From Rhodosorus marinus CCMP1338 (lineage: Eukaryota; Plantae; Rhodophyta), in contig JAMWBK010000005.1 of assembly GCA_029953675.1 (NCBI GenBank), positions 1 to 64,000 of the forward strand: DNA of 64,000 nucleotides. Direction: 5' to 3'. The position numbers were made by a program, and so were the translations under genes. The notes beneath the pieces are model-generated. The model saw only the letters and a list, made by a program, of their open reading frames with translations. It was not told where the DNA came from and did not search any database. Positions 5,175 through 63,701 of the stretch are shown one piece after another; position 1 is the stretch's first letter, and every line of letters begins with the position of its first letter.

Positions 5175-5242
5175 ATCACTCGATAAGCGTTCGTAGAAAG
5201 AATGAAAGTGTAACTTTATCACCACGATAAACTCCAAAGTCC

Positions 5243-5471: not shown

Positions 5472-8400
5472 GTAAACTTTACTGGGCAGCTGCCTACTGC
5501 AGCGTATCACTAATGCTACTACTGTCTTGGGAAAAGCTTACTCTAACCCCGCTACCGGGGTCTCATTCTACGTTCTAAAGAAAAAAAAACATGGACCAGT
5601 GGATTCGCCAACTGGTCCACTCGCAGAGCGCCTATCGCGATCTCCGCGTTCCCCTGCCATGATTTGCGGTTGATCTAAGCCCGTACATCGCTCAGTTCTA
5701 GGCTCCGGTGCAACAAATGCTTGCAGCTATCTCGTAGAAATTCTTGGGCCATTTCTCCTGTACGCCCAAAGCTCTCATTCGCGATGGGAATGAGCTTGTC
5801 GTATGGCTTCTTTACTGACATAGCCTCTTTTTAATGCGCCATTTTCCACCTCTCCGCTCTTTTCGCTGCATATCCGCTCTCTGACCCACTCCGATTCACG
5901 TATTTCTCCTGCAGTGGCGATGTAACCGTCACATCCAGCGCATACCTTTGGAACGTCCTGGGATGAGTGGCAATGATATCCAGTCTTAGTCGGTAGTTCT
6001 CGAAGTACCACTCCAGTTCTTGCTTAATGTCGATGAAATTCCAGCGATTCAGCCATCGCGCCAGCTCCGTACAGATTTCGTGGTGCCTTCGCTGCCATAG
6101 TCCCGTCGATGTTGGGTAGTGGTGAAACCTTTGTACGCCGTTAGTACTACCGGTACTACCCCAACTAGTACACGTCCTCAACGTCCGTATTCTCGGTACG
6201 GGCAAGCCCAACAGCTGTCGTACATTCACTTGCAGTTCTGCTGTACTCATTTTTTTCAGCGCGAGCGTCGGCATTTCCCGTAACCACACTCCTGATCCAG
6301 CTCCGGCTGCGGACCCAATTCTGGCCCGATCTTCAGCCGAAATTTGCCTGTGGGATACCAGTCTTTGGAAAGCTGCATGGTGTGCCTCTCTGGAGAGGGT
6401 TTGTTGAATGGAGCCATGTCTCCATGCTGGGGGATCGGCTTCTTCTGCTCCTGGGGCGGGTTCGGTTCTCTGCTTCAGGGTGGCCAAGTTCTTGATTCGC
6501 TCTGGGGCCTCTGGGCACAGTCTGCGTTGTGTTGCTGCTGCAGACTCGCATATATTAGCTGTGCTGTTGACCTTTGAATTCTCCTCAGTGCTTGTGTTGC
6601 TGCACGCACTTCCGAAGATGCTTGTTTTTGGACCTCGGTGAGATACGGCCATTCCCCGTTATTAGCTTTGAAGGTCTCGCACCAGGCCGAGCAGAAGGTG
6701 ACGGGCTGGATCCGTTGTCTCGTAGCGAAGCCCAGTCCCCCCCAGCGACAGGGGAGTGCTATCTGGTCTAGTGTAGGGTCTTCGTAGTCAGGGTCCTCGA
6801 TGGCCGTAGTAGTGAGGCCTCCGAATAGTGTATCTAGGTGATAACGCGTCAGGACGTCCGCTTACCGTGCAAGTGTTCTTCCAAAGGGGTAGGCGAGGCA
6901 GCGTAGAAAGTAGTCCAGGCGGGGTTTAGCACAATACCGGAAGAGGGCCAGTTTCGTAGTCAGTTCTTCAGGGGGCAGGTGCACAATCTCCTTAAATAGT
7001 TTCTCGTGGTTGTTTTGTAGCCGCCGGCACTCGCTTTGGATGTAAGCGCGTGTTCCAATCCGATGGAATGGATTGTAACTCCTTCTCGCGTCGCCGTGAC
7101 GCCAGGGATGTCGCGGCCAAGCAGTCGTGGCGTGGTCATCGTGGTGCCGTACAAGGTGCACTTGGCAAGCTGCAGTCGCGCTCCGAGTGAGGGAAGCAGT
7201 GTCTGTCCCCAGTGTAGTACGTCTTTCAGTAGTTGTAGCGGCCCTACGATGGTGATATCGTCGTGGATTGCCACAATAGTTAAATTAGGTGCTTTGTTGT
7301 GCAATGCTTCCAAGAAAGGTGCCAGGGAGAGCGCATGTAGGATCGGTCCTAGCGGATCTCCGTGTTGAACTTCCGTTGTGGCCCGAAGTGTCAAGCGATG
7401 GGTGTCGTCTTGGTCTGCACCGTGGTTATCACGCCATCCGAAGAGTGTAGGAGCTTTCGTGCTGTCATTTCCGTAGCCAAGCCGGTACACGGCTTCCAGC
7501 TCGGGGAAATGGTGGTCCAGGATTTGCTTTGCGATGCGGCGGTCGATGCGGTTGAACGCATTCTCCAGGTCGAGCCGTAAGACGACGGCGTCAGGTTCGC
7601 ACGAGAGGTGGGCCTGGATCGCGTGTAGTGATCGTTCACATCCACCGCTAACTCCGATGCCCAGTTGTAGAGGTTTGAGCAGTTCCCTAACGCGGTCGGT
7701 AACCGATCGAAGGATCCACTGTGTGGCCACCTTTCGGAGGACTTCGGGTACTCCGATCGGCCGGATGCCAGGCCTCGCTGCAACGGGTTTGTTGCTCGTG
7801 GCTTTTTCGAAGGGCAATAGTCCGCTGCTACGCATTGCCCGGGTCATCTGGGGTACAAACTTCTCTGGTGCCGTAGCGAGTTGCCGGAGAACGCGGATTA
7901 GAGCCACTTGGACGTCCTGGGTGGCTCCCTGTAGGTGTTCTGCTCGGAGTCCACTAGGCCCGGGGCTGGTACCTTGGGGAAGCCGGGCTATTATCGCGAG
8001 AATATCTTCATCTGCTGCTTGTCGCGCATTCCATCTTCTCCCGAGATTATCGGTGTCCTTGGAGAGCAGGTTTTGTAGGGCTTGGTCGACATCCTCCGGT
8101 AGGGAACACTCCGTCGGGTCCGGAAAGAGTTCCTCCGATTGTTGCCACGTAGCGTTGGTAAATGGAGCCAGTTCGGTGGCCTGCAGTCTTCGGGCCGCGT
8201 GAGAGAGGCGTCCGAGATGTGCCAATTTCAGGGCCTGTTTTCGGCGCCTTTGCGCCTGTTTCTGGGCTATTTCAGGTCCGCTTAGGGCAGTACGAGGGGT
8301 CTGGTTGGAGGCATACTCCTCGAGCGCAGTCCAGACTGTGTAAAACTCGCCTCCGAGTACGTGCGTGACCTGCGTGCCGATTTGAAGAGTAGTATACCCG

Positions 8401-8872: not shown

Positions 8873-10115
8873 ACTGGACTTTACTGGACTTTACTGGACT
8901 TTACTGGACTTTACTAGCATAGCCTGAAGCGCTACGCAAAGGCGTGAAGATGAACTAATAACTAGGGAGGGAAGCATGCAACCCCAGGCGCCGATGGCGC
9001 GCCTCGGAAAGCATGTCGCTGGAATATCGCCAAAGGGAGACACTTAAACGCCTCAAGAGCGCCAAATATTCAGTAGGATGTTCAGCAAAACATTTCCGCA
9101 ACCACTCTAAACCCGACTTATCCACGTGACCAAAGCTTTCCACAATGAATGGCTGGAACCGGTGAGAGCGACCCTCAGCGCAAGGCAGACTGGCCATGCT
9201 CTCAGCATACCGTCGTTCCTTAACTCTTCGAAGGGCTGAAGCCGCGGCCCCCCGGCGGCGGGCGGCTGCGGTGAGGTGGGCGCTGGCCACGGGGCAGGTA
9301 ATCGCAAGGTCCACATATGTTGAGCGTCTGGCAGCAGCGTCGGAGACGAGGAGATCGGCTATACAACGGGGCGGTGCAGAGTCCGAGATTGATCTGGGCA
9401 GTTCCGACTCAACCTCAACCGTATGCCCTATCCGAGTCAAAAATTCGCTGAGGATGTACTTGAGGCGAGTGTGACGCCTCGTACGGAGACCTCTCAACAG
9501 TCCGCAGGAACCCAGGAAGTGGTAGCCACAAGCGTCAATCCGGCTCTCACATCCCTGACAGAAAGACGGCCGATTAGAGTGCCACGGAGCCTGTGGCAAA
9601 CCGAGATAGATCCGTGCGGCAGAACGGAACTGGAAAGCATCGAGACGATGACTCAATGACGACGGTAGAGTGGTTAACCACAAGTGCGAGAGGTGGCCTC
9701 CCATGCCGCGGAGACGAGCGGCAGCGGTAGGCGGCGTGAGAGGAGAATTGAGCATGATTGTGTGAGCGGCACTGTGTTGGCCCCAGGTGAGGCTATGTTG
9801 AATCACATCAGTGCGGGAGCTCCACAATCGGCTCAAACCCGGGTAGTCTGCAACAGGTGACCCGGGGCTAGCCTCTCCGTCATCGGCAAGAACTCGGTCG
9901 AGGGGAGAATCCTCAATCGCTTTAGCTCGTCCCCATGACAGCTCCCTCCAGGAACGAAAGCGGGACCGATTTGCGTCCGGCACGGCGTTGCACCTCCTGA
10001 ACGCGTGCTGAAGACCATCATAAATTGTCAAAAGCGGGGGCGGCAGGGTCACTGGATCCTCGTTGGTCAAAGCTCGAGCCAAGAAGCAGGCACTTCGCAT
10101 CTGGAAGGTCACCAA
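8873..10115 (-). mobile_element. 5'-truncated family B RLE retroelement (ORF 8955-10115) with (AGTAAAGTCC)4 tail
   Basis: CQGC..HFLGSC, RH, E, ADLLVSD..YVD, K..Y, ESFG motifs; 10-nt tail repeats at 8873-8912. Confidence 0.88.
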
Positions 10116-10126
10116 CGTTCGCAGCG

Positions 10127-10190
10127 CGGGACTTTACTGGACTTTACTAGCATAGCCTGAAGCGCTACGCAAGGCGTGAAGATGAACATT
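10127..10190 (-). mobile_element. Family B 3' tip (hairpin + tail only)
   Basis: Near-identical to 8895-8955. Confidence 0.8.
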
Positions 10191-10610
10191 TACTAGCACA
10201 GCCACTTTTACATTAGTCTGAGAGGAGTCTGGGTTCACGGTTACGATAGTCAGGGGTCCTGCAAGGACTCGCCGGCTGATTTCAAAGGGCCAACGCGAGT
10301 CCTGGAATATGCTCTTCCAGCGCGCCCTCGATTTGCAATGGAAAACGATGTCGCTGACATTCTAACCCCAAATCTATTTGATTGAGTTCTATGAATTTGA
10401 TTGACCTATGAATAAAACGAGGAAAAAAAGCACTTTCAAGATCTGAAATGGGGTGTCTCCATTGGGTTAAAAAAAATTTCTTTACAGCACGAATGAATAA
10501 TATTTTGAAAACTTATTATCTTACAGTCTGCCATTTGCCAATTGGATATGTTCAGATATGTAAGATGATATTGAAAACAAAACAATTTGCGGGTTAGCCA
10601 GTGTAGCAAT

Positions 10611-13224: not shown

Positions 13225-13700
13225 GTGAACACGGGATGCTTCGAGGATGGGGGCTTGTTAATGTGTCGGACCGAGGGTATGGCCAGTCTGCCCCGCGCTG
13301 AGGGTCGCTCCCACCGGTTCCAGCCTTTCGTTGTGTGCCTTTCACCAAGCTTTGGTCACGTGGAGAAGTCGGGTTTGGAGTGGTTGCGGAAATGTTTTAC
13401 TGAGCATCCGGTTGAATACATGGAACTTTTGCGGCGTTTAAGTGTCTCTGTGGCGATATTCGAGCAGCATCGTTGCCGAGGCGCGGCATCGGCGCCTGGG
13501 TTTGCACGCTTCCCTACCTAGTTCTTAGTTCCTTTTCACGTTCTGTGTAGCGCTTTAGCCTATGCTAATAAAACCTACTTCGAGCAGCATGCTTGCCGAG
13601 GCGCGCCATCGGCGCCTGGGTTTGCACGCTTCCCTACCTAGTTCTTAGTTCCTTTTCGCGTTTTGCGTAGCGCTTTAGACTATGCTAATAAAACCATTAA
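13225..13700 (+). mobile_element. Decayed family B-variant (B') RLE C-terminus with tandemly duplicated 3' end
   Basis: AEGRSHRFQPF..SFGHVEKSGLEWLRKCF matches family B; the 3' end occurs twice (~13480-13575 and ~13585-13695). Confidence 0.8.
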
Positions 13701-13999: not shown

Positions 14000-15270
14000 G
14001 AAAGTCCTGATTAACATATTCTTCCGTGATGGCCGGGGTCCCTCCGCGCTCCACTCCTGGGGGTCCGGAGATCCCGAGGGCGGAGGTGCCTACTGAGGGT
14101 GGACACAGAGTGTCTCTTCGCGCGGGCCCTTTCTCCACGCAGGTGGAGTTACAGGGCACCTCTGGTACGCAAGTGCGTGCCCTGCTCTCTGCTGTAACAA
14201 GCATGATCACGGCTGCGGGCGATCGAGGTGTCATTACTCAGCTTACCCAGAAGTTAGGGGACCTGGAATCGGGTCTCCTGGCGAGGGAAAATGCAAATTC
14301 GGGTGAGAATCGGGTGAGAATTTGAATTCCAGCTGGGTGGCCAGGTTGGCGGAAGACAGTCAACTTCACCAGGTCAATCAACAACCTGTCGCGGGACAAG
14401 CGAAGGGAGCTTCGGGATCTGGAGGTGACAAAGGTGGTTCCGCGCCTGGCGCCTCTTCGGAGAGGGGTGCAGAGCTGCCTAATGCTTTGAATGTTCCCTC
14501 AGCGGGAGCGGAATTTTTGGTCCTGGGCCAGCCCTCAGGTGGGCGACAGCTCCAGGCCAAGGGGGGGGCACGCGGTGGTCCCAAGGGGGGCCCGTCTTAC
14601 GTCTCAGTTTTGCGGAAGGGTACCACAGGCGCACGAACGGCGGCTATGCTAAGATCTTTGCCCTCTAGCGAGCAGCAGGGCGGACCTGCGGGGTCGCGAT
14701 GTCCTCTTTGTGGTCACTGCAACCGCGGCCACATACCCGCAGGCCCTGCTGGAGAAGCCTACCTAGCAGTGGCCTGAGAGCGCCCGCTGGTTGCGTTCTC
14801 AACCCCAGGTCGTATTGCATTTCGAGTTCGACCGTTTTCCCGGCACTTTCCTCTCTCCCGGAGAAACAGCAGGGCTATCTGAGAACGACACCAGTGTGAA
14901 AGCTGCAGCCATCCATTGGCTTCGCATTCACTGCATGGAGCGAATACTTTTGGAGCGTTTTGCGTCGGGTCCACGCCATCTGCGCGCAGCCGCCTCTACC
15001 TTTTTTGACCGGGAGAGGCACCTCAAGGTGCCTTGAGCTGACCTCAAGTCACCAGGCAGAGCTACGGCGTTTGGGAGTATTAGAAGGCTTCTCTGCAAGC
15101 ACCACGTCCAGTGCGAGTGGCGAGGAAGGGGAGCCGGAGGTCATGTTGGTCGAGAACGCCCCTATTACTTTGTTGAATCCCGGGGGAGCCATCCCGTGAG
15201 CCTCGCGGAGTGGGCGGTTGACCAGTTTGGTGAGGTTAGGAGGCAAGCGCGCGAGGAGCGACTACAACGT
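14000..15270 (+). pseudogene. Decayed ORF1 type D (non-LTR gag-like), internally deleted, followed by a B' 3' UTR
   Basis: Frames 14026, 14322, 14791 and 14960 match 38146-39260 and 62250-63670 (SYVSVLRKG; KAAAIHWLRI; GPRHLR). In-frame stops at ~14772 and ~15197. Confidence 0.75.
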
Positions 15271-15344: not shown

Positions 15345-15608
15345 CGGCGACAGGCTACAACGTTCATTCATTTTACGACCTCAGCAACACTTGTTTCCCA
15401 ACGTCTTTCTCTCTCTTTTTTTTTTTTGTCCGTTGGAGGGGCGAGATGTTGTATTTAGGCGTCCGTAGTCTTTCTTTGGCTTTATTTGTTTGAACGCTTC
15501 CCTACCTAGTGCTTAGTTCCTTTTCACGCCTTGCGTAGCGGTTTAGGCTATGCCAATAAAGCCAGCCAATAAAAACCAGAGCATTAGGCTGTGTTAGTAA
15601 AACCAGTA
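15345..15608 (+). repeat. ~265-bp direct repeat, left copy (right copy 18272-18537); contains a B' 3' UTR
   Basis: Near-identical apart from poly-T length; brackets the A4 insertion. Confidence 0.9.
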
Positions 15609-18271
15609 ACTGTAAACTTTACTCGGCAACTGTCTAATGCAGCGCAACACTAATTCTATCAAGATCTAGGGAAAATGTGTGTGTTTAACCCCGACTCCCG
15701 GGGTCTCTAGCTACGATAAAAAAGAAAAATAAGGGATCAGTGGCTGGTCCGACTGATCCACGCGCAAAGCCCCTAACGCGAGCTCTGCGTTCCCTGCCCA
15801 GAGTGTTCTGTTTAGTTGAGCCCGCACGTTGCTCAACTCGTACTGCTTAGTTAGCATGTGCCCACAGCCCTCACGGAGAAAGTCTTGGGTCATCTGCCCT
15901 GTTCTGCCGAAGGTTTCTATCGCAATCGGAATCAGTTTGTCATCTGGATGTTCTGTCGCCATCGCCTCCTTGTAGTGTGCAAGTTTCCAACGCTCCGCCT
16001 GTTTTGCTGCATAACCATTTTTGTCTTTGCTGTTGGCTAGGTGTCTCGCCTGTAGGGGTGACACCACCGTCACATCGATCGCAAATCGTTGCCAGGTTCG
16101 AGGGTGTATAGCTACCAAGTCAGGTCGTAGATTCGAGTTCGTGAAGTAGTCTGTAGGTTCTTGCTGAACATCTCTGAACTGCCATCTGTTAAGCCAACGC
16201 GCCAGCTCAGTGCAGAGCTCATCATGTCGCCGTTGCCAGAGCCCAGTCGAGGTCTGACAATGATGGAATCTTTGTACACCGTTCGTACGGTGTGTACTAT
16301 TACACGTAGTACACCTCTCCGTCGTCCGCAGTCCCGGAATCGGGAGACCCAGCAATTGTCGGATATTCAGGTGCATGCCTCTCCCACTCAATTTTCGGGG
16401 TCCGAATTGTGGCAAATCTCTTAGCCAGACGCCTGAACCTGCTCCTGCAGCGGAACGGATTCGGGCACGATGTTCCGGGTCGAGTAAGGGATCCGTGACC
16501 AGTCGGGTGAAAGCAGTAAGGTGTGCCTCTCTTGAGAGGGTCTGTTGTAGGGAACCTTGCTTCACCGCAGACTGGTCAGGGGGGGAATTTGCTGCAGGGG
16601 CAGCAGTCAGGTACGTGGGGTTGAGGAGCTGCCTTATTCGGGGGCTGGTTTCCGGTCTCAGTCTCCCCCTAATGGCTGTAGTTGCCACTAGGATTTGGGA
16701 GGGGAGGTCGTCAGTAGAGCGGTGTAGTGTCCTCGGGGGGTTGAGCAGCTGTGGTGTAGCTTCCTGGGTGCGTTCTAACAATTTTTGTAGGTGGGGCCAA
16801 TAGCCCTTGTTAGCTGCAAAGGTTTGAATCCAACCTGTGTAGAAAGAAATAGGTTGGATGCGCCTTCTAGTGCAGAATCCCAGTCCCCCCCATCGGCAGG
16901 GGAGTGCTACCTGCTTCCAAGCCGGGTGCGTTCCGTCAGGGTCGTCCGCATGGGCTGTTTGTAGACAGCCTAGTAGCCTTTCCAACTGTAGTCGTGTGTT
17001 GTAGTCCGCTTCTCGTGCTAAACTTCTGCCGTAGTGGTAAGCCACTGTCCTTAGGGTGTAGTCAAGTCTCGTTTCCGAGCAGTATCGGAACAGCGCCAGT
17101 TGTGTGTTGAGCTCTTGAGGCAGATGGGCTATCTCTTTGCCCAGTGTTTCATGCTTGTTTTCTAGTGTTCTCAAAGCTTCTTCCACATATTTTCTCGTCC
17201 CAATGGGAATGGAGTGTATGGTTACTCCTTCGCGAGAAACATTGAGGTCCAGCATGTATCTGGTAACCAGTCGAGGGGATGCTATGTGGTAGCCGAATAG
17301 GGTGCACTTTTGAGGCTGTAGTTCCGCCCCAATGGTAGGGAGGGCATTTTGACTCCACAGTAGGGCATCTTTCAGGGACTCCAGGGGGCCCACGAGCGTG
17401 ATATCGTCATGGATGGCGACAGTAGTCAGCTCAGGGTATTTCTGCCGCAGTGCTTCGAGAAAAGGCGCCAGTGAGAGGGCGTGTAAGGCAGGTCCCAAAG
17501 GATCTCCTTGTTGTACTCCCGTCTGCGCTTGTCGGTGTAGTCGATCTGGATCCAGTGTTCCGTCTGTAGCTTTGGGGCGCCAGCCAAGGAGCGTAGGTGA
17601 GTCCTCGCAGTTGCTTCCATATCCCAGGCGGTAGATGGCTGCCAGCTCTGGGTAATGGCGGTCGACTAGTTGTTTGGCAATACTCCGATCAATTCGGTTG
17701 AACGCATTCGCCAGGTCGAGTCGTAGAACTGCCGATTGTGGTTCACAGTAGAGATGGGCCTGTATTGCGTGCACCGTTCGCAACCTCCACTGACGGCAAG
17801 GCCTAGTTGCAGGGGGACGAGGAGCTCCCGAAGTCGTGTGGTCAGGTGACCTAGTACCCACTGTGTCGCTAGCTTTCGTAGGACCTCAGGAACGCCAATA
17901 GGTCTGACAGCAGGCTGCGCAGGTGGGGGCCCAGTAGTAGGGGACTTGACAAACGGCAGCAGCCTGCTGCTGCGGAGAGCCCTGGTCAGGACTGCCGGGA
18001 GCCGCTCCGGAGCCGTGGCCAACTGTCTCAGGAACCGTACCAGGTGCGGGTGTGCCTCACGCGTTAGCATCTGTAAGTGCTCTGCGCGGAGCCCGCTGGG
18101 CCCGGGACATTTGTCTTTCGGCAGCAGGGTCAGTTTGGCGAGTAGACTCTCATCCGAGGCTTGTCCGGCCAGCCACCTGACCCGTAGTTGGGCGTTGTCC
18201 TGTGCAAGTAGTGTCTGCAGGGTTTGCTGTAGATCCTCAGAGAGAGGGGTGTCTGTCGGGGTTACGGGGTT
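15609..18271 (-). mobile_element. 5'-truncated family A4 element (ORF2 RT-RLE, frameshift ~17780) with 3' UTR
   Basis: Track ORFs 17666-18298 and 15711-17861; GVQQGDPLGP, AIHDD, CTTC..HHC, RPD; C-terminus IPYFSFLS. Confidence 0.9.
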
Positions 18272-18537
18272 CGGCGACAGGCTACAACGTTCATTCATTT
18301 TACGACCTCAGCAACACTTGTTTCCCAACGTCTTTCTCTCTCTTTTTTTTTTTTTTGTCCGTTGGAGGGGCGAGATGTTGTATTTAGGCGTCCGTAGTCT
18401 TTCTTTGGCTTTATTTGTTTGAACGCTTCCCTACCTAGTGCTTAGTTCCTTTTCACGCCTTGCGTAGCGGTTTAGGCTATGCCAATAAAGCCAGCCAATA
18501 AAAACCAGAGCATTAGGCTGTGTTAGTAAAACCAGTA
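18272..18537 (+). repeat. ~265-bp direct repeat, right copy
   Basis: Matches 15345-15608. Confidence 0.9.
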
Positions 18538-18880: not shown

Positions 18881-19649
18881 TGAACTTTCAAGTTATAAAC
18901 AAAATTTGAATGAACCAGAAAATCTTTTTTTGAAAAAGAACATCTTAAAGTGCATTCGTGGGTTTTTTCGTTTCGTCTTATGGAGTAAACTGAATGCCGT
19001 ATCGACGAAAAGAACTATGTATTTAGAAGCACTAGGTGGGATTACGTTATTCTAATCCCTCCGATTAAACCATTCGTTCATTCTGGGGTAATCCCGCTGG
19101 TAATCCGTAGAAGGCAGGCCTGTCGGAACGGCTTTTCCGAGTCCATCGTTAGACATGTCGAACCTGACGAAGCTTGGTTTACCATATATACTGGACTTTA
19201 CTAGCATACACTCGCACAGACTCACCGTCATTGGTCACCACGGCAGGTAATCTAACGGCAGGTAATCGGTAGAAGGCAGGTCTGTCGGAACGGCTTTTCC
19301 GAGTCTGGGGTTATGCATGACGAATTTGACGAAGCTTGGTTGTGTACCATATACACTCGCGCAGACTCACATTGGTAATCACGGCAGTCGCGAATAAACC
19401 CAAATTGGGTCTTTCACAGCAATTTGGGGTTATTTCCGCTGGGATACTTGGGGGACAGATGTACATGGAGGCCTCAACAACTTTCCCCGCGTCTCCGACC
19501 TCGGCAATTCGCTTTCTCCTCGTGAACCTGTCTTTGCCACTAGGAACGTCTTTCGTCCCGAAAATTCCTGCCCTGAGCCTCAGGAGACCGAAAATCGTTC
19601 CGTTCGTTTGAAATGTCGCCTGAAAACAGTTCTTCCAATACCTCTCCAG

Positions 19650-22290
19650 GTAAACACGTTCCCCGTCCTCCAGTAACTTTATCAACGGCTCCTGCTATGT
19701 ACGTTCGAAAATTCTCGCGAAGAACGCGGATCGAACCTGCGTCGATATACTGTCGTCCATGACGTGTGACAACCACTTGGCCATCTCTTCTTTGGGTAAG
19801 TGTTTTTCCCCATACTCCAGCAACTTTATCAACGTCTCTCCTTTCTCCTGGTTTTCCGCAAATAACTGAAGGACGCTCTCGCCGTAGCAGTTGATGTGTG
19901 ACAACCACTTGGCCATCTCTTTTTCGAGTAAATACTCTTTCCCATACTCCAGCAACTTTATCAACGTCTCTCCCTCCCTCTGGTGTGCCGCACAAAAATG
20001 AAGGACGCTCGAACCTCCGCTGTCGACGTGTGACAACCAGTAGGCCATCTCTTCTTTGGGTAAATACTTTTCCCCATACTCCAGCAACTGTATCAATGCC
20101 TCTCCCTTCTCCTGGTGTTGCGCACATAGATCAAGGACGTTCCAACCGGTGTTGTTGACGTCTGACAACCACTTGGCCATCTCTTCTTTCGGTAAATACT
20201 TTCCCCCATACTCCAGCAACCTTATCAACGTCTCTTCTTTCTCCTGGTATTTCGCACAAAAATGAAGGACGCTCGAACCTCCGCTGTCGACGTGTGACAG
20301 CCACTTGGCCATCTCGTCTTTGGGTAAATGCTTTCCCCCATACTCCAGCAACTTTATCAGCGTCTCGCCCTTCCACGGGATTTCCGCACATCTATCAAGG
20401 ACGCCACGAGCGAAGTTGTCGACGTGCAACAAACACTTGGCCATCTCTTCTTTGGGAAAATACTTTTCCCCATACTCCATCACCCTTATCAACGTCTCTC
20501 CCCTCTCCTCGTTTCCCGCACAGATATGAAGGACGCTCTCATGGCCGTTGACTTCCGACAACCACGTGGCCATCTCTTCTTTGGGTAAATACTCTCCCCA
20601 ATACTCCAGCAACTTTATCAACGTCTCTCCCTTCTCCTGGTATCGCGCACATACAGGAAGGACGCTCTTACCGTAGTTGTCGACGTGCGACAACCACATG
20701 GCCATCTCATCTCGGGGTAAATACTTTTCCCCCTTCTCCTGGTATCGCGCACATACAGGAAGGACGCTCTTACCGTAGTTGTCGACGTGCGACAACCACA
20801 TGGCCATCTCATCTCGGGGTAAATACTTTTCCCCATACTCCAACAACTTTATCAGGTGAACCCTCTCCTGGAATTGCGCACACAAATGAAGGACGGTCCA
20901 ACCGTCGTCCACGACGCGGGACAACCATTTGGCCATCTCTTCTTCGAGTAAATGCCTTTCCCCATACTCCAGCAACTCTATCAACGTCTCTCGTTTCTCT
21001 CGTTTGTACGAGTACGTACTCGCACATGTATGAAGGACGCTAAAACCGTCATTGTCGACGTGCGACAACCACTTGGCCATCTCGTCTCTGGGTAAATGCC
21101 TTTCCCCATACTCCAGCAACTCTATCAACGTCTCTCCTTTGTCCGGGTGTCCCACCAATGTATGAAGGATGCTACGACCGGTTTTGTTGACTTGCGACAA
21201 CCACTTGGCCACCTCGTCTTTGGGTAAATACTTTCCCCCGTACTCCAGCAACTCTATCAGCGCCTCTCCCCTCCTCCTCGCACATGCATGAAGGGCGCTC
21301 TCACCGTAGTTGTCGACGTCCAACAAGCGCTTGAGCATCTCTTCTTTTGTTAAATATTTTCCCCCGTACTCCAGAAACTCTTTCAACGTCTCTCCCTTCT
21401 TCTGGTATCGCGCACAGGAATGAAGGACGCTCCTACCCTCGTTGCTGACGTGTGACAACCACTTGGCCATCTCGTCTTTGAGCAAATACGTTTCCCCCGA
21501 CTCCAGCAAATATGTAAACGTTTCACCCTCCTTCCCCATCTCAGCGCACTTGTGCAGGTACTCCCCTGCCAACTCTAGGTCCCAGTTCGCACCTGCTATA
21601 GCACGCCCTAACGCCCCAAATCCAGATTCGTCTAAATCCCTGGGACCCTTTCCGGATTCCGGCAACAATCTACGAGAACTGCCTGCCTTCGCAGGCTGTT
21701 CTGATCCGATCGTGCTGACCACAGCTCCCTCCTTAGGAGTCTGACAGTTATCTTTTCCATTTCTAGATTCATTTTTGCATGATTCGTCACTCGCTTCATC
21801 GCTCATCACGGTCGACACTCTATCTTCAACTTCCGCTGGCGACTCGGGTGCTTTTCTTGGGTCCAAACTCTTTTCCCGCCCTGGATCAAGTCCTGACAGA
21901 GTCTCACTCAGTCGGACTACAATTGTTCCAAACTCTGGCCGTTCCTCTGCTGCTTTAGAAAAACATTCACACGTCAGTGTCGTCACCTCCTCGGGGCAAC
22001 CACGCTCTATCATGGCCAACGGCGGAAATTCGTAGGTGCCTTATTGCAACTGACGAAATATTGAACTCAACTGCAGCTACTTGTATGAAACCTCCCCAGA
22101 GAACAGCTCCCACACAAGAACCCGAAAGCTGAAAACGTCCGTCTTCCTGTTGAAAGACGGTTGGTCCTCGCTCACGCATTCCGGAGCCATGTATTGATAA
22201 GTCCCGCCGTTGGCCCCAGCATGCGTAACCGCCGGGCGCTGATTGACTGTCGTCTCCTGCACGATTTGTGCCTAATCGGGGTAAGTCCGC
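19650..22290 (-). pseudogene. Decayed TKL-type protein kinase C-lobe fused to ~14 tandem 44-aa ankyrin-like repeats
   Basis: GTYQYMAPE, DVFSF..LVWEL, GCPEEV..C..ERPEF (kinase subdomains VIII-XI). In-frame TAG (22077) and TAA (22041), damaged DFG. 132-bp repeat period; unit GETLIKLLEYGEKYLPKEEMAKWLSHVDxxGxSVLHxCAxxQEK. Confidence 0.8.
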
Positions 22291-23030
22291 AGGCGCAGGG
22301 GGAAGGAGGAGGCGCGGGAGAAGTCTAGGATTGGGTTCCACCTAATGCCAGGAACAGTCAATCGCTAACTGTTCATTTACCTTTGTAATTGGAGGGAACC
22401 GAGTAAATCAATCAATACTGATACTATGGCCATATTTTGGCTTATTGGAAGAGGCGGAATCTCCGCCTTCACAATCAATCATTATTATCGACCATGACAC
22501 TATGAATCAAAGTCCCTTCGAGCGCTTTTTTCCGTTTAAGTAAGACGTTCAGCAACTGGAGAGTTCCTTGTGACTACGTTCAGCAACTGGAGAGTTCCCC
22601 GTGATACTACGAGGATCCGCGAACGACGATTTCGACGGAATCTTGACCAGCTCAAAAAAGCGCCCTCGGTGATCTTGGGACGGCGCTCTTCGGGGCTTTT
22701 TCTTTAAGCGAGTTGAAAATGATTGGGCTATCTGTAGACTTAATCTCATGCTGATCCATAAAATTCGTCCGTTTGCAAGGACGAGTTCTGCCGTCGACTC
22801 CAGGATGTAGCGCGACATTTTTTTTTGATCGGCGTGAGAGTACGTCTGCAGATAGCCCAATCATTCAACTCGCTTAAAAGAATGAATGAAGGGTTTGATG
22901 AATTAGGGAAACCTCCCCGAAAGCCATTTGTATTTTTAATAAGCCGGTTTTGACCAGCTTAATCGGCGTAGCACTTTACGCTTTGTTGTTATCTTTGAAG
23001 TGACCTGAAACGCTACGCAAGTCTATTCCG

Positions 23031-23202
23031 GTATGCTAGTAGGGTCGTTCCTGTAGTATAGGGGTCAGTACACCCGCCTGTCACGCGGGAGACCCGGGTT
23101 CAATTCCCGGCGGGATCGCAACACTCATTTGCCCTAGTTATTAGTTCATCTTCACGCCTTGCGTAGCGCTTCAGGCTATGCTAGTAAAGTCCAGTAAAGT
23201 CC
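23031..23202 (+). mobile_element. Candidate tRNA-Asp-derived SINE carrying the family B 3' end
   Basis: tRNA + 14-nt linker + B 3' UTR hairpin + (AGTAAAGTCC)2, flanked by AGTCTATTCCG at 23020-23030 and 23203-23213. Confidence 0.75.
23047..23118 (+). tRNA. trnD-GUC: tRNA-Asp(GTC) or tRNA-Asp-derived SINE head
   Basis: Cloverleaf: acceptor GTTCCTG/CGGGATC (one T-T mismatch), discriminator G, anticodon stem CCCGC/GCGGG, loop CTGTCAC, T-arm CCGGG-TTCAATT-CCCGG. Confidence 0.88.
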
Positions 23203-23259
23203 AGTCTATTCCGTGACCGCCCGGACCATCTACAATCTTTCCTTTTCTCGCTCGATTGA

Positions 23260-23385
23260 GTTTCTTGCTGTGGCGCATGAACGCTGCTGCGTTGCTCTTG
23301 GAGGCCCGCGACCTTCGCTGTGCGTAGTCTTTTTCCTCCTTGGTTTTTTTTTTTCTTAGCCTCCGATTAAACCATTCATTCAGTC
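23260..23385 (+). mobile_element. Diverged family C-like 3' end
   Basis: CTGTGGCGCATGAACGC (LWRMNA) followed by CCTCCGATTAAACCATTCATTC. Confidence 0.7.
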
Positions 23386-24799
23386 CAGGGTTCAAGCACA
23401 CGTGCGATTAAGTAAATCTCCTAGGAAACGTTTGCGCAAAACCTGCTAATTCATATTAAAAAAGGTTAGCTGCTGAATTAAGTAAATCTCACTGAAAGCC
23501 ATTTTAATTCTTAGATACGCCGGTTTTGATCAGCTTAAACGGCGTAGTGAATGAATGGTTTAAACGGCGTAGTAGTGCCACAGGCTACGTCAACATCATT
23601 GAACAGGCCGGGACGAGGGGGTGCGCTGAGATTTACTTAATTCAAAACTAAGCTTTTTTAGTGTTGCATTGTAGGTTTTGCGGAATCGATTTGCGCGGAG
23701 ATTTTCATCACCCGACTAAGCATCTTATTCAGTACAAATTTTACATCCAATTGATGAATCATAATACATCCAATTGAATGAATGATTTGTGAATGAATTT
23801 GCTGAATTGGAGGCTAAACCCAGGAGGGCAAAGAGAAGACTAGACACGGAAGCCTCAAAGCCAAAAACAATTGAGGCAGTCGCGGCGATGACGAATGGAA
23901 ACGAAACTCCAGCCTGCAGCAGTATCCTGGAGTTCCAACGTGGTGATGACAATCGACGGAATTAAGGTTGCTACACGATGACGGCGAGTGACGGAACCGT
24001 AAATTTTACGCGGCAGTCGCCTGCTGTAGCGAAACCTAATTCTACAACTTTCGAAGGGATACTGCCCGAGTCCATCTAAAGGCACCGCACCCCAGACTAT
24101 CGCATTTCGAAGCAGTTAGGAGTTGAGCACGTAACAAACTTTAAACTTCTAGACACAAGTAGGAGCAGAAGAAGAGCACAAAAGGAAACTTGGGTGTTTT
24201 GTTTTTTACTAGAAACTAATGGCTTGCAAGTCAAGATGTACACGTTTACTCGTTAATTAGACGTCTAGCCGATTGAAAAAAAATCTGCTAGTGGTATTTT
24301 AGCCAATAGGAATAATCGACCAAGGCATTCTCCCTCCCCAGTTTGACTTATATATCGGGGACTTGTCTCCAATAGGATATAGTGGCGGGGGACCACGGCC
24401 TTCCCGCTCCGCGCAGCTTGGCTTGAATCTATCTGTATCACATGATCAGCCTCGACTAACATTCTGCGATAATATCGCCAAAGAGCACGCTCGGATCATC
24501 TAGGTAGGATGGCCTTGCAAATCTACTTTGCTAGTCCTGGATTTCTCTCTCAAACCCTTAGGCAAAATGCGGCGATACTATCATTTTCTTTTGAGCGCGG
24601 ATCACAAAGTCATTCATTAAGCAACTTAAAATTCGGGGTACAGAGGGGAGCTAGGGACTGAATATATGTGTCAATCGTTTGATCAAGTTTGATCATTAAG
24701 TATACCTGCTTATTCGGCTCAGTGAAAGAACGATCAATTTCACAAATTGAGTTAATAAATTAATCATAGGCTGGGAAAAAAGCCCCTAAGAAGGAAAAA

Positions 24800-25700: not shown

Positions 25701-26807
25701 ATGAGGAGCCGAGTCGTTCTAATAGTAGTCGTATCAGCATTTCTTTTCGCGTCTGATTGTCAGGCGCAGACCAGGTTCCAGATATGCCTCCCGGAGTGTC
25801 AGGTAACAGTACCCGTGTTGGAACAGACATGCAGAGTTATTAAAGGTCCAAACAACTGCGACTGCGGGTCAAACGACGACACTGACAACACTGAGCTGAA
25901 AAGGCTGCAGGGATCTGCTTCAATAAGATGTCGACACGGTTGCACTATCAACAACGAGTGGGTTCCACCGCATCTAAACGAAGAATGGTTGCGGAAGCGC
26001 GATCCTACTGTGTATCCTCATGAAGGCAAGCACTGTGGAAATATTTGCAACCACGAGTGTAAGGAAACAGTAGCAGAGTTGGAACAGACATGCAGAGTTA
26101 TTAAAGGTTCAAACAACTGCAACTGCTTGTCAGAGCCAAGCAGTAGCAGTGGGCTGCGAAGGCGGGAGGCCGATGCTCGAATAAGATGTCGACACGGTTG
26201 CACTATCAACAACGAGTGGCTTCCACCGCATCTAAACGAAGAATGGTTGCGGACGCGCGATCCTACTGTGTATCCTCATGAAGGCAAGTTTTGTGGAAAT
26301 ATCTGCAACCACGAGTGCAGACAATCAATCCCGCAACTTGAGCAATTCTGCAGAAGATCAACCCATAGATGTGACTGTAGTTCAGACGACGTAACTGATG
26401 CGTCACTGATTGAAAGGGAGAGAAGGGCGCGATTACAATGTGAACGCTCTTGCACTATCACCAACAAGTACGTTCCAGAGAATCTCAACGAATGGTGGTT
26501 GCACATTCGAAGTCGTGCTGTGTATCCTCGTGAAGGCCGGTATTGCGGAAACGTATGTCTTGAGGAGTGTAGATCTTCTATATGGCAACTCGAAAACCGC
26601 TGCAAGATAAGACGAGGAATAAACAACTGCAACTGTCTTAAGGATATCGCAGATAAACGGCTGCAGAGGAAGGAACTCAAGGCTAGGAATCTCTGTGATC
26701 GTGGATGTAACGTTCATAGAGAGTACATTAAGAGGGCTGATAATGAATGGTGGAATAGAAAGCGTAGGTTTGACAAATATCCTGCGAAGGGCAAGAAATG
26801 CAGATGA
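25701..26807 (+). CDS. Secreted Arg/Cys-rich protein with four ~85-aa tandem repeats (368 aa)
   Basis: ATG at 25701 followed by a signal-peptide-like MRSRVVLIVVVSAFLFASDCQA. Repeats C..C...LEQ.C....NNCxC...C..GC.I.N.W...YP.EGK.C; units 1 and 2 are 261 bp apart. No stops. Confidence 0.85.
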   Translation: MRSRVVLIVVVSAFLFASDCQAQTRFQICLPECQVTVPVLEQTCRVIKGPNNCDCGSNDDTDNTELKRLQGSASIRCRHGCTINNEWVPPHLNEEWLRKRDPTVYPHEGKHCGNICNHECKETVAELEQTCRVIKGSNNCNCLSEPSSSSGLRRREADARIRCRHGCTINNEWLPPHLNEEWLRTRDPTVYPHEGKFCGNICNHECRQSIPQLEQFCRRSTHRCDCSSDDVTDASLIERERRARLQCERSCTITNKYVPENLNEWWLHIRSRAVYPREGRYCGNVCLEECRSSIWQLENRCKIRRGINNCNCLKDIADKRLQRKELKARNLCDRGCNVHREYIKRADNEWWNRKRRFDKYPAKGKKCR

Positions 26808-34213: not shown

Positions 34214-34249
34214 GTTACGTTAGTCTGGGGTCACGTTAGTCTGGGGTAC

Positions 34250-35074: not shown

Positions 35075-35571
35075 AATATAGCACCACCCCGTTGTATAGC
35101 CGATCTCCTCGTCTCCGACGCTGCTGCCAGACGCTCAACATATGTGGACCTTGCGATTACCTGTCCCGTGGCCAGCGCCCACCTCACCGCAGCCGCCCAC
35201 CTCACCGCAGCCGCCCACCGCCGGGGGACCGCGGCTTCAGCCCTTCGAAGAGTTAAGGAACGACGGTATGCTGAGAGCATGGCCAGTCTGCCTTGCGCTG
35301 AGGGTCGCTCTCACCGGTTCCAGCCATTCACTGTGGAAAGCTTTGGTCACGTGGATAAGTCGGGTTTCGAGTGGTTGCGGAAATGTTTTGCTGAGCATCC
35401 TACTCAACATTTGGCGCTCTTGAGGCGTTTAAGTGTCTCCCTTTGGCGATATTCCAGCGACCTGCTTTCCGAGGCGCGACATCGGCGCCTGGGGTTGCAT
35501 GCTTCCCTCCCTAGTTATTAGTTCATCTTCACGCCTTCCGTAGCGCTTCAGGCTATGCAAGTAAAGTCCAG
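35075..35571 (+). mobile_element. Family B 3' fragment
   Basis: RLE C-terminus ending LHASLPSY, with an 18-bp internal duplication (AAAHLT) and tail. Confidence 0.85.
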
Positions 35572-35682
35572 TCCATTATAGAGAAGGACCCTTTTGTACT
35601 TCGCCGCGCTTAGTCTTTTTTTCCCCTCGGGGTTTTTTTTTCAGCCTCCGATTAAACCATTCGTTCGTTTTGTACGGATATA

Positions 35683-36605
35683 ATGGACTTTACTAGCATA
35701 GCCTGAAGCGCTACGCAAGGCGTGAAGATGAACTAATAACTAGGGAGGGAAGTATGCAACCCCAGGCGCCGATGGCGCGCCTCGGACAGCATGTCGCTGG
35801 AATATCGCCAAAGGGAGACACTTAAACGCCTCAAGAGCGCCAAATATTCAGTAGGATGCTCAGCAAAACATTTCCGCAACCACTCTAAACCCGACTTATC
35901 CACGTGACCAAAGCTTTCCACAATGAATGGCTGGAACCGGTGAGAGCGACCCTCAGCGCAAGGCAGACTGGCCATGCTCTCAGCATACCGTCGTTCCTTA
36001 ACTCTTCGAAGGGCTGAAGCCGCGGCCCCCCGGCGGCGGGCGGCTGCGGTGAGTTGGGCGCTGGCCACGGGGCAGGTAATCGCAAGGTCCACATATGTTG
36101 AGCGTCTGGCAGCAGCGTCGGAGACGAGGAGATCGGCTATACAACGGGGCGGTGCAGAGTCCGAGATGGATCTGGGCAGTTCCGACTCAACCTCAACCGT
36201 ATGCCCTATCCGAGTCAAAGATTCGCTGAGGATGTACTTGAGGCGAGTGTGACGTCTCGTACGGAGACCTCGCAACAGTCCGCAGGAACCCAGGAAGTGG
36301 TAGCCACAAGCGTCAATCCGGCTCTCACATCCCTGACAGAAAGACGGCCGATTAGAGTGCCACGGAGCCTGTGGCAAACCGAGATAGATCCGTGCGGCAG
36401 AACGGAACTGGAAAGCATCGAGACGATGACTCAATGACGACGGTAGAGTGGTTAACCACAAGTGCGAGAGGTGGCCTCCCATGCCGCGGAGACGAGCGGC
36501 AGTGGTAGGCGGCGTGAGAGGAGAATTGAGCATGACTGTGTGAGCGGCACTGTGTTGGCCCCAGGTGAGGCTATGTTGAATCACATCAGTGCGGGAGCTC
36601 CACAA
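35683..36605 (-). mobile_element. Family B 5'-truncated copy
   Basis: Nearly identical to 8900-9830. Confidence 0.88.
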
Positions 36606-36629
36606 TCTAATTCCACCTCTACATGTCAC

Positions 36630-38038
36630 TTCATTGGGGTATTTTCTCGATGAAGAGCTGAGCGCTCTGCCGCGACCCACCTGTGATGTTGTGCGCGCCC
36701 AGGTAGGCCTCCCATTGCGATTGGGGGGACTGGGCCTCTGCAATCGTATTGTGGTCCAACCTGCAGCCGCAGTAGGGGCCTGGGGAACCGCACTTCCCAC
36801 TTTGAGCAGCTTGGGTATCTCGAAGTTCCGCAATTTGATGGCGAGCCTCTCGCGGGGTGTCTTGCTTCCCAGCGTACCGGAAAGCGCCCAAGACTTATTT
36901 CTGGAGCTCCAAACCGCCCTGAATTCCTGTACTAGTCTCCCCGAAACCGTTCAACCCCGTCTTCCTGACTGGCGAGCTGTATTTGACCGCTCTCGAGGCT
37001 CCGCCCCGGGGATTCGTCCTGCGCCTGAACCTGTTCTAGGGGAGATTGACCCAGTGGTTGCCGCAGAAGAAGAAGTTCCAGTTGATCCTCCTGATGATTC
37101 CCAGCGCGCTGGGAGCCGAGCTCAAGCACGCACGGATGCGCTGCAAAATATCCTTTCTTGGGACTTGCACCGTGCTCCATATGGCCGACTCCTCGCGCAG
37201 ATGGTCTCATCTTCTCGCGCTCGCGCCCGCCTACGTAGTCTTGGAGGGGTTATTAGCTCTCAGTGGCTCATGACCGTACCAGCCTTTCCGCCACTCACAC
37301 TGTCGGATTTCGAAGTGCGTACTTCACTGCGCTTATACCTCGGCTTACATCAGCCCCCTTGGCCGTACGAGATGGGTTCGTCGTGCCCTCTCTGCTCTCA
37401 GACTGAAGACAACGCAGATTTTGGCGCCCACCTGCTCGCTAGTTGCCCGGCGGTGAAAGGTGCTCGAACCCGCCGCCACACACGGATCTTGAACCTGTTA
37501 TACCGGGAACTTCGGCCTATAGTCCGGCAAGCCGGTCTGGAAATCGAACGTGAGAAACCTTTACCCGTCGCGGACTTTCAAAATGATGAACGCCGTGTAG
37601 CCGACCTGGTGATCACCTGTGACGACAGCCGCCCTACCACATACGTTGATCTTGCTGTTCCTAACCCTCAAGCTAGTCGTTATCTCCCGGCTGCGGGGGA
37701 GCGCCGTGGATCTGCCGCCGCCAGCATGAGACGCCGCAAAGAGATCAAATACGCGGGGGCTTTGTCTTCCCCTGGTGTTCGTGCTTCGGCACTAGCACAT
37801 CGCTTGGTACCCCTGATCATTGAGTGCTTTGGGTTCATGGACTCTGTTGGTTCTCGCTGGCTTCGGGAGTTGTTCCGCGAACGCCCTGACCGTCTTCAAT
37901 CGTTGTTTACCCGCTTAAGTTTCCTGCTGTGGCGCATGAATGCCGCTTTGATGTTGGAGGCGCGAGTACTTCGCCGCGCTTAGTCTTTTTTTCCCCTCGG
38001 GGTTTTTTTTTCAGCCTCCGATTAAACCATTCGTTCGT
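36630..38038 (+). mobile_element. Family C 5'-truncated copy (thumb-RLE, ends LEARVLRRA) with 3' UTR
   Basis: Reverse-complement match to 10611-12030. Confidence 0.9.
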
Positions 38039-38140
38039 AGGTGAGGCTCTGTTGAATCACATCAGTTCGTGAGCTCCACAATCGGCTCAGACCCGGGAAA
38101 TCTGTAGCCGGTGACCCGGGGCTAGCTTCTGCCTCGTCTG

Positions 38141-39400
38141 CGAGTATGCTGTCTCTTAGCTTGGGCCCTTGCTCCACGCAGGTGGAGTTACAGGGTGCCT
38201 CTGGCAGTCAAATGCGCGCCCTACTTTCCGCGGTCACTAGCCTCATCACTGCTCCGGGTGATCGAGGCGTCCTGCCCCAGCTCACCCAGAAGCTTGCTGG
38301 GCTGGAATCGGGACTGCTCCAGAGTGCTAATTCAAACTCTGCCGGAAATTTGAACTCCGCCAGAATGGCCACGTTGACTGAAAACAGTCAACATCCCCGG
38401 ACAATCAACATGGACCTGTCCCGGGACGGGCGAGGGTGGCTGGGCCTGCATGGGACAGTGAGGCGTTGAGCTGTGGCAGGCCGGGCCAGAACGGGCTTCA
38501 GCGCTCGGGGATCGGAGGCAACGGCGGTGCTGCCGGTGAGATAACCGGTTTGGCGGAGAATGAAGCTGTGTGTCCATTGTTAGCACCCCCTGCACCTGGA
38601 GCGGATTTCCCGGTTCTGGGTGGTGCCTCATGGGTCAACGGCTTCGGGCCAAGGCTGGAGCCAGTGATCGCCCCAAGGCGGGGCCCTTATACATCGCCGC
38701 GCTAAAGGACACTACTGCCCGTACGGCGGCTGTGCTTCGGTACCCGCCCGCTACAGAGGCTTCGGGTCGACCGTCCGAGGCTACTCTGCAGTTCGTCTGG
38801 GTGGGCAACGTTCGGCCCCAGACAACTCGGGGCCAAGTACTGAATGTGCGTGAATTTGGCAACATCTTTGCAGAATCGTTGGGCTGCCGTCGCGAGGGTT
38901 TTTTCTTCGCCAATACTGAGGGTCGCGACGTTCTTTTCCTCGTTACAGCGGGGCGCCGCCACTTATCTCCAAGCGTTGCTCGCGACGCCAATCGAGCAGT
39001 GGCCAGAAAGCGCACGATGGTAACGTGCGCACCCACAGGTTACCATGCACTTCGCGCTCGACCGGTTTTCCGGTCACTTTTTTTCCCGGGGGCAGACTGA
39101 AGGGCTCTCCGAGCATGACAGCAACGTTAAGGCGGCAGCCATCCATTGGCTGCGCGTTCAGCGCATAGGGAGGAGCTTGTTGGAGGGCTTCCGGTCAGGT
39201 CCACGTCATCTCCGCGCGGTCGTCTCCAACCTCTTTGACCAGGAGAGGCGCTTGTGTTGATCTCGCCTGACACGGCTGCACTACAGCGGATGGGGTTTTT
39301 GGATGGATCTGCTTCTAGTACCAGTTCCAGTGACAGTGGAGAGATTGGGGCGCCGGAGGGCATGACCGTTGAGTGAGTCCCGAACAATTCGTCGAACCCA
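38141..39400 (+). pseudogene. Decayed ORF1 type D
   Basis: LQFVWVGNVRP..FAESLGC..FFFA..EGRDVLFLV; KAAAIHWLRV; GPRHLR. Frameshifts and stops. Confidence 0.75.
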
Positions 39401-39805
39401 GAAGGCAATATACTGCGATCATCGCGGAGCGGGTGTCTGACTACTTTAGGGCGGCCATCCAGCAAGTGGGCTGGGACCGACTTGCCCTGGCCTAAAACCC
39501 GCGTCGCACCCAAACCTGCGGCGTGGGTTTAGGGGGTCAGGCGCCTGTCTTCCCTTACGATGAGAGTCCTGACCCGACGGTGTCGTCTTTGCTCCCCTCC
39601 CCCCAGGTGGACGCTCCCACCACCAACGTAACCCCGTTTTGGACTCCCTCAATTTGGATCCATCCAAGAGGACCGAATCTGACCCCTCTGAGACCCCAAA
39701 AATGACCCCGAAATCAAAATCTGAGACCATCCAAATCAGCCAGCCAAATACATACCGCTTCCCCCCTCGAAATCGGGTTCCTTGGACCCTCGAAAGTCAA
39801 TAACC

Positions 39806-63670: not shown

Positions 63671-63701
63671 CGCTCCAGGCACGGCTGCGAGGTCGCAGCC
63701 T

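Follow-up and report, generated by a model that had tools for sequence, protein, structure and literature searches.

Composite retroelements and their LINE partners

Short interspersed elements (SINEs) are thought to arise when the reverse transcriptase of a long interspersed element (LINE) fuses an RNA polymerase III (Pol III) transcript to the 3' end of a LINE, and the first product of such a fusion is rarely met intact. The subject of this report is an insert of 172 nt (positions 23031-23202) in the first 64,000 nt of contig JAMWBK010000005.1 of the red alga Rhodosorus marinus CCMP1338, a stretch referred to throughout as the window. The insert joins a nearly perfect tRNA-Asp(GTC) to the last 71 nt of an R2-like LINE family, here called B, and may have been made in just that way.

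The closest described relatives by anatomy are the tRNA-derived SINEs (SINE2) that take their 3' ends from a partner LINE, as set out in the Ohshima/Okada model (reviewed in PMC3747384, PMC5786205). The insert has in common with them a tRNA head with A and B boxes, a short linker, a LINE 3' end with a hairpin and a tandem-repeat tail, a target-site duplication (TSD) and a length of 172 nt; its head is tRNA-derived, its 3' end is shared with a LINE of the same genome and its TSD is of the length that this partner makes. In contrast to SINE2 elements, it is known as a single copy, so that there is neither a consensus nor a set of subfamilies to refer to, its head is a tRNA, leader and trailer included, that has hardly changed, where theirs is a diverged tRNA-like region, and its partner is an R2-like LINE with a restriction-like endonuclease (RLE). 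Familiar partners of SINEs are LINEs of the endonuclease-APE clades, such as L1, L2, CR1 and RTE.

By its junction, the insert resembles U6/L1 and other small-RNA/LINE chimeric retrocopies, which are made by template switching or RNA ligation (PMC4476161, PMC6789731, PMC11838501). In these, a full-length Pol III RNA in sense orientation is fused through its oligo-U end to a 5'-truncated LINE 3' end, the whole lying within one TSD; here, likewise, B sequence probably begins where the captured RNA ended naturally, after one extra base (CATTT, then G, then B). The differences are that the LINE is R2-like, of the RLE type and with a 10-nt repeat tail, instead of L1 with its poly(A), that the captured RNA is a tRNA precursor and not U6, and that an additional B-tail-like piece lies 5' of the small RNA. 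The WEIRD/Mg-SINE/MGL chimeras of Magnaporthe grisea fuse two to three retrotranscripts by single or double template jumps; they include a tripartite chimera with 14-bp direct repeats and exhibit preferred switch sites in the LINE RNA (PMC2104539). Those sites bring to mind the recurrent 70-80-nt fragments of B. Host and LINE are not the same, however, and the third (5') part of the Rhodosorus insert is only 16 nt long and may be a Pol III leader.

The use of an RLE LINE has precedents too. In Entamoeba histolytica, EhLINE1, an RLE LINE, mobilises the short non-autonomous EhSINE1 (PMC1635306, PMC3118788), so that RLE LINEs can drive SINEs and such pairs are already known. EhSINE1 and the Rhodosorus insert are both short, associated with an RLE LINE, inserted at dispersed sites and flanked by a TSD; unlike the insert, whose head is a tRNA-Asp, EhSINEs are abundant. 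We know of no tRNA head in EhSINEs. The R2 SIDEs, reportedly described by Eickbush and Eickbush in 2012, are said to be short, internally deleted derivatives of R2 that carry the R2 5' ribozyme, insert into ribosomal DNA and lack a tRNA head. They are non-autonomous and use the 3' end of an R2-type element, as the insert does, but they are deletion derivatives of R2 itself. The novelty of the insert lies in its combination of a red algal host with two parts, the precursor of a tRNA and an R2-like LINE whose tail is a 10-nt repeat; the freshness of its scars is also unusual.

Anatomy of the insert

Between two copies of AGTCTATTCCG stand, in order along the forward strand, a leader, tRNA-Asp(GTC), a spacer and the 3' end of family B. 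The 5' copy of this 11-mer (23020-23030) directly adjoins the first base of the insert and is repeated exactly at 23203-23213, where it doubles as the first 11 nt of an older fragment of a second LINE family, C. The window contains just these two matches to it, even with one mismatch permitted. Shuffling the window yields ~5 pairs of any 11-mer at a spacing of 100-400 nt, and the chance of finding such a pair at both boundaries of the unit is estimated at ~1e-4 or less; a chance origin of the repeat is thereby excluded.

The 16-nt leader GTATGCTAGTAGGGTC (23031-23046) ends on the base directly preceding position +1 of the tRNA. At 13 of its 16 positions it agrees with the end of a B tail (CTATGCTAGTAAAGTC, the final 16 nt); whatever else in the window comes close to it is a real B tail. 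An extended alignment (TTCCGG-TATGCTAGTA with TTCAGGCTATGCTAGTA) scores ~3.3 standard deviations (sd) above shuffles. The initial annotation, made from the letters of the window, had taken the leader for a decayed B tail and seen in it a hint of a tandem source. The resemblance supports that view, in the sense that the source of the unit would have adjoined, or been joined to, a B-like tail.

The tRNA (23047-23118; 72 nt, nuclear type) is identified by ARAGORN and by the Rfam tRNA model, at 59.5 bits (E 2.4e-10) over model positions 1-71 of 71. Its A box (TAGTATAGGGG) and B box (GGTTCAATTCC) can be read from the sequence, its sole flaw is a U2-U71 mismatch in the acceptor stem, and it is not followed by CCA, which implies that it was not copied from a mature tRNA. 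The spacer CAACACTCATTTG (23119-23131), at first counted as 14 nt, is 13 nt long and consists of a 12-nt trailer, CAACACTCATTT, and one G. The TTT run at 23128-23130 is at the place where the Pol III terminator of a tRNA gene is expected. The G agrees with neither the logic of a trailer nor B, which reads ...CTTCCCT ahead of CCCTAG; homology to B therefore starts at 23132.

The B part (23132-23202) comprises the end of the 3' untranslated region (UTR), a hairpin and the tail. By BLAST against the window, 23132-23205 matches 45511-45438 on the minus strand at 74 of 74 positions, 8967-8893 (also minus strand) at 98.7% and 35681-35745 at 98.5%. The hairpin (GCGTAGC/GCTATGC, 23161-23181), which is predicted by folding, pairs 23161-23167 with 23175-23181 (7 bp) around a loop at 23168-23174; the sequence of its stem is conserved in 11 tails, among which no covariation was found. 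Two AGTAAAGTCC units (23183-23202) form the tail. Thus all of the parts that had first been claimed (the 11-bp repeat, the 16-nt leader, the 72-nt tRNA, the hairpin and the two tail units) are present. The first TTTT after the tRNA is at 23243-23246, essentially where it had been placed, 30 nt beyond the 3' TSD copy and 125 nt beyond the tRNA, and a Pol III transcript of this copy would be predicted to pass through the B tail to that point. No open reading frame (ORF) spans the junction of the insert.

One insertion, young, in an old target

The 172-nt unit was inserted as one piece by target-primed reverse transcription. Three lines of evidence lead to that conclusion: the repeat adjoins both the last tail unit and the first leader base, a control insert of B behaves in the same way, and the relative ages of insert and target fit. 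The control is a minus-strand insert of a B tail alone (~77 nt, 45441-45518; feature span 45431-45527) with a 10-bp TSD, AGTGTTCTTC. An empty paralogous site of its host element, near 6860-6890, reads CGTGCA-AGTGTTCTTC-CAAAGG, the insert being absent. The control and the tRNA-bearing insert have the GCA|AGT target in common, and their TSDs, of 10 and 11 bp, indicate that B makes duplications of 10-11 bp.

As to the ages, the sequence immediately downstream (23203-23385, forward strand) is a 183-nt, 5'-truncated and frameshifted 3' end of RLE LINE family C, with its tail ending in ...AAACCATTCATTC. Its identity to six other 3' ends of C is no more than 74-78%, and its protein match is divided between two frames. 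By tblastn, SLFRDRPDHLQS, starting from the AGT of the 11-mer, is aligned to ELFRERPDRLQS of C, so that protein homology begins exactly at the 3' 11-mer. The B part of the insert, on the other hand, is unchanged over the 74 positions that it shares with another copy, and the TSD is perfect, without a change in either. A young insert in an old target is the consequence.

The other side of the target also appears to be retrotransposon debris. The upstream flank CCTGAAACGCTACGCAAG (23003-23020, minus strand) matches the B hairpin region in reverse complement at 17 of 18 positions, with a local alignment score of 29-31 against a shuffle mean of ~14 (sd ~2.3), about 7 sd above, and it is probably what remains of an older B tail. 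The point of insertion would then be the junction of this older B-tail debris with the older C fragment, and the site before insertion would have read ...CGCTACGCA-AGTCTATTCCG-TGACCGCC.... Extension of the C fragment upstream of the TSD, which would have provided an internal empty-site proof, was looked for and rejected (alignment score 23 versus 22 +/- 3 for shuffles).

New LINE pieces are found directly behind older LINE tails elsewhere: at 10129/10125, 38036/38060 and 13695/13700 in the window, and at 3622/3624 of the related contig L003. Head-to-tail joins between LINEs of the same or of different families (10125-10196, 13579-13700, 38036-38060 and L003 3545-3800) have no recognisable duplications between their members; they may reflect targeting directed by tails, or single cDNAs made from several templates. 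The wider surroundings of the insert are repetitive too. Local inverted repeats lie at 22700-22882 (arms of 64 nt, 84%) and 23414-23704 (arms of 78 nt, 80%), and a direct repeat, 22896-22971 and 23471-23547 (83%), also surrounds it; these repeats hold decayed inverted C-type tails (GAATGAATGG...).

The partner family

The longest B copy in the window (8896-10125, minus strand; ~1.2 kb, 5'-truncated), whose tail serves as reference, has an ORF for the C-terminal CCHC motif and restriction-like endonuclease, with the motifs CxxC...H...C, RRHTR and ADL...VDL. This ORF is 37% identical to the ORF of family C over 358 amino acids (E 1e-61). The link to R2 runs through C, which matches solved R2 proteins both in the reverse transcriptase (E 7e-10) and in the CCHC/RLE region (CCHC...RHN). 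Compared with R2 by itself, the B ORF gives a weak match (E 0.6); the reverse transcriptase part of B is not in the window. The homology of B to C, and of C to R2 in both regions, makes B by homology an R2-like RLE LINE, and the RLE partner proposed at the outset is in that way borne out.

All copies of B in the window are 1.2 kb or shorter, and none is intact and full-length. Several are very short (15, 69, 72 and 77 nt), from which it follows that the B reverse transcriptase often quits its template within the last 80 nt. The shortest is a micro-insertion at 19195-19209 (minus strand) that consists of B tail alone (GCTAGTAAAGTCCAG) and interrupts one unit of a 162-nt tandem duplication of host sequence; the other unit, 160 nt away at 19352-19372, is uninterrupted (GAGTGTATATGG). 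It shows that abortive products of target-primed reverse transcription only a few bases long exist. The same copy had suggested a B2 subfamily with GTATGC as the source of the leader; that candidate was rejected, the copy at 19193 being the 15-nt micro-insertion beside a host GTAT. Two further ideas about B were discarded: a tRNA as the regular 5' head of full-length B, for which there is no support (B-bearing loci lack a tRNA, and the copies in the window are all 5'-truncated), and a B 3' UTR that is itself tRNA-like, since its alignment to tRNA brings out no real similarity. At 35081-36607, two B copies stand tail to tail in a 377-nt palindrome (35194-35570 and 35684-36060, 97%); its 113-nt centre holds a 68-nt insert of C tail alone with an 8-bp duplication, TTTTGTAC.

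Elements related to B are transcribed. Among the nearest relatives of the B ORF is a peptide from a Rhodosorus MMETSP transcriptome, and contigs L003 and L004 of JGI sample 3300016967 carry the B tail, with stretches 100% identical to the tail of the insert.

Copy number of the unit

A BLAST search of the 172-nt unit against the window finds only matches to its tail, and no second unit, not even a decayed one. Rfam (E<=1) detects only two structured RNAs in the window, the tRNA of the insert and a U2 small nuclear RNA (snRNA) at 61893-62089. That the window has no other tRNA-like sequence had escaped the initial annotation, as had the C fragment behind the insert and the hairpin-like flank ahead of it. 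The protein search with the B ORF gave five matches, which supplied another 33 kb of Rhodosorus sequence (L002-L005), and in these, also, there is no tRNA-like sequence. (The corresponding search with the C ORF gave one distant ENA match.) The count over the 64 kb and these 33 kb of related loci is therefore ~19 B-type tails to one tRNA head. Exact-pattern scans for the tRNA/B junction found nothing in collections of metagenome, genome and viral contigs, the Rhodosorus genome not being among these; a like scan of metagenome contigs for the B tail returned one chance bacterial match (L001). In R. marinus, repeats make up 15% of a genome of 31 Mb (PMC10250338). The counts exclude a SINE more numerous than its LINE in regions of this kind; tens to a few hundred copies in 31 Mb are compatible with them.

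A proposed origin

The reading that we prefer, while giving it only about an even chance, is that the insert is a one-off or few-copy chimeric retrocopy, produced when the B reverse transcriptase switched templates, and a proto-SINE by build. Three elements of this reading are things that we infer: that templates were switched, that the tRNA part goes back to Pol III and that the unit is one-off or low in copy number. The trailer ends in TTT at the junction, as would the oligo-U of a nascent Pol III transcript, which points to the capture of a tRNA-Asp precursor; the T run at 23128-23130 would be the terminator of the source gene. The equipment of a tRNA SINE is present in full (A and B boxes, a terminator shortened to TTT, the hairpin and tail of the partner, and a TTTT 30 nt past the TSD), and it is on this account that we call the insert a proto-SINE by build; no amplification is implied.

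Events at the target might have run as follows. The bottom strand would be nicked at GCA|AGT, where old B-tail debris meets the old C-family fragment. Reverse transcription would start on the (AGUAAAGUCC)n tail of a B RNA and copy its last 71 nt, whereupon the enzyme would move to a Pol III transcript of tRNA-Asp(GUC) from which the trailer (CAACACUCAUUU) had not been removed, entering it at its oligo-U 3' end and adding one extra, non-templated-looking base at the switch before copying the tRNA. For the 16-nt B-tail-like stretch there are three options, none of which the data favour. It could be the transcript's own leader, in which case the source tRNA would lie directly behind a B-like tail and would probably already be a retrocopy; it could have been added when the enzyme, on reaching the 5' end that RNase P had left on the tRNA, jumped once more and resumed at the 3' end of a further B-like RNA; or it could be the truncated end of a longer read-through RNA. 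A staggered cut of the top strand, 11 bp off, would then yield the TSD. End-to-end template jumping by the R2 reverse transcriptase is well established in vitro, and for R2-type LINEs the phenomenon is known mainly from such test-tube work.

Several considerations weigh against this preferred origin. RNA ligation, or a B tail that landed in the terminator of a tRNA gene and was then read through, would be indistinguishable from template switching. The C fragment and the TSD begin at the same base, for which we have to call on a preference of B for tail-like GCA|AGT sites that is based on two cases. Three further points, namely the leader, the acceptor-stem mismatch and the very fact that a copy was met at all, speak for an alternative, as discussed next.

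Alternative origins

The most substantial alternative is that the insert belongs to an established, Pol III-transcribed family of tRNA-Asp SINEs that B mobilises in trans. Transcription would run from ~16 nt upstream of the tRNA through the TTT and the B tail, and the B protein would recognise the hairpin and tail. A B-tail-like leader is to be expected if the master copy sits behind a B tail, a typical place for new insertions in this sequence; such a leader fits a retrocopy as source, in which case retroposition would have taken place twice or more, as it should in a SINE. The U2-U71 mismatch stands in an otherwise mutation-free insert and could stem from a diverged SINE master. The anatomy and the TSD are complete, the terminator is down to TTT with the next TTTT at 23243, and B-related elements are transcribed. 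Furthermore, that 64 kb taken from 31 Mb should contain a copy is likelier a priori if the family has many members, and the encounter mildly favours there being more than one. On the opposite side, no second copy, however decayed, exists in 64 kb plus 33 kb of LINE-dense sequence with ~19 B-type tails, 16 nt is long for the 5' end of a SINE, and the oligo-T at the junction can be explained without a SINE. The initial annotation had proposed a new SINE. Of that proposal, the full anatomy and the insertion in one piece stand; the solitary copy in the 64 kb and 33 kb and the TTT at the junction, which fits a one-off chimera, count against it. That the established family exists seems to us possible, though doubtful, and we are equally tentative about seeing in the insert a member, maybe the very young founder, of an active tRNA-Asp-headed SINE family mobilised by an R2-like RLE LINE.

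3' Transduction is unlikely. It would make the insert a 5'-truncated copy of a longer RNA polymerase II read-through RNA, from a source with a B-like element, a tRNA-Asp gene and a B tail in that order, with priming on the distal tail; reverse transcription would have stopped at least 16 nt into the proximal B-like tail, and its product would have been joined to the target by microhomology. Such a join might be seen in the similarity to B that may run from the leader into the 5' TSD copy (TTCCGG-TATGC compared with TTCAGGCTATGC), but the extended similarity is weak (z ~3.3; TTCCG against TTCAG, 4 of 5). Dense B tails, often arranged head to tail, and the severe 5' truncation that is usual for B would suit the scheme; it nevertheless requires a specific three-part source locus, and it leaves as coincidences the TTT at the junction and the leader that ends exactly at tRNA +1.

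We consider it very improbable that a resident tRNA-Asp gene was joined independently by a truncated B tail and a tiny upstream B-tail piece, the 11-mer being coincidental or due, for example, to insertion of the C fragment into a B tail with AGTCCAG (23199-23205 and 23381-23387) as its duplication: the tRNA is nearly perfect, tiny B-tail insertions exist (the 15 nt at 19195-19209), AGTCCAG does lie on both sides of the C fragment and new LINE pieces commonly settle behind older tails, but an exact 11-mer at both boundaries has a chance of ~1e-4 or less, the C fragment (74-78%) is much older than the B tail (100%) and so cannot have been inserted into it later, the 7-mer comes cheaply, AGTCC being part of the B tail unit, and, where a functional gene should have T4 or more within ~15 nt, the tRNA has its U2-U71 mismatch and only TTT after it.

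What the insert would mean

The scars of the event can still be read: leader, trailer, oligo-U junction, extra base, perfect TSD and a tail identical to that of the partner. If more copies exist, we would be looking at the birth of a SINE, in a lineage that has received little study; if it is a single copy, it would be direct in vivo evidence that R2-type enzymes capture cellular tRNA transcripts, a matter that bears on the fidelity of R2-based gene-insertion tools and on how red-algal subtelomeres are constructed. Were there truly a SINE family, it would constitute a natural record of R2-type reverse transcriptases creating SINEs by template jumping and, as far as we know, the first tRNA-headed SINE with an RLE LINE as partner.

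Other features of the window

The window is eukaryotic and dense in non-LTR (long terminal repeat) retrotransposons; its ORFs, when looked up, had no entries as called genes. Rhodosorus marinus supplies the closest relatives of its LINE proteins, in the form of an MMETSP0011 peptide, a protein at NCBI and JGI contigs, and its family-C copies are 98.6-99.3% identical to those of R. marinus CCMP1338 contig JAMWBK010000013.1 (L002). It opens, at 1-430, with a 16-nt repeat, TAACCCCAGACTAACG, in 26 exact units whose C-rich strand is the top one, the arrangement of a left chromosome end, and it looks subtelomeric. Single or double 16-nt units in the opposite orientation also occur directly 3' of the tails of a further LINE family, A (...AGTAAAGTTTACAGTTAC|GTTAGTCTGGGGTTA); besides 1-430, the repeat is noted at 5242-5466, 28040, 29861, 34218-34249, 41775, 41952, 47117, 48289 and 51012. 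The unit may be an unusual telomere repeat, and RLE LINEs may target it.

The U2 snRNA (61893-62089, forward strand) is full-length, with an Rfam score of 128.8 bits, and is flanked by 61803-61879 and 62090-64000. The tail of a 4.7-kb LINE ends 13-15 nt before it, and another A-family LINE, which runs on past the end of the window, follows it directly; two more copies of that LINE (14116-15019 and 38155-40357) are without U2. Here a second small RNA could have been trapped between LINEs, or a U2 gene could serve as a LINE target, for which Utopia elements offer a comparison.

Two direct copies of a 117-nt segment, at 15447-15563 and 18376-18492, each with a B-like tail (forward strand) at its end, flank a 2.9-kb minus-strand LINE (ORFs at 15711-17861 and 17666-18298); they may represent an unusually long target duplication, or insertion into a tandem. 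A host gene at 19695-22400 (minus strand) encodes the C-terminal half of a protein-kinase domain (GTYQYMAPE...DVFSF) followed by ~14 ankyrin-like repeats of 44 amino acids each (a 132-nt period). To judge from stops in frame close to the kinase part and from the lack of subdomains I-VII, this gene may have introns or be a truncated pseudogene. An ORF at 25701-26807 (forward strand), with no homologue in a collection of 5.8 billion proteins, specifies a secreted-looking, Cys-rich protein that is built of four units of ~86 amino acids (258-nt repeats).

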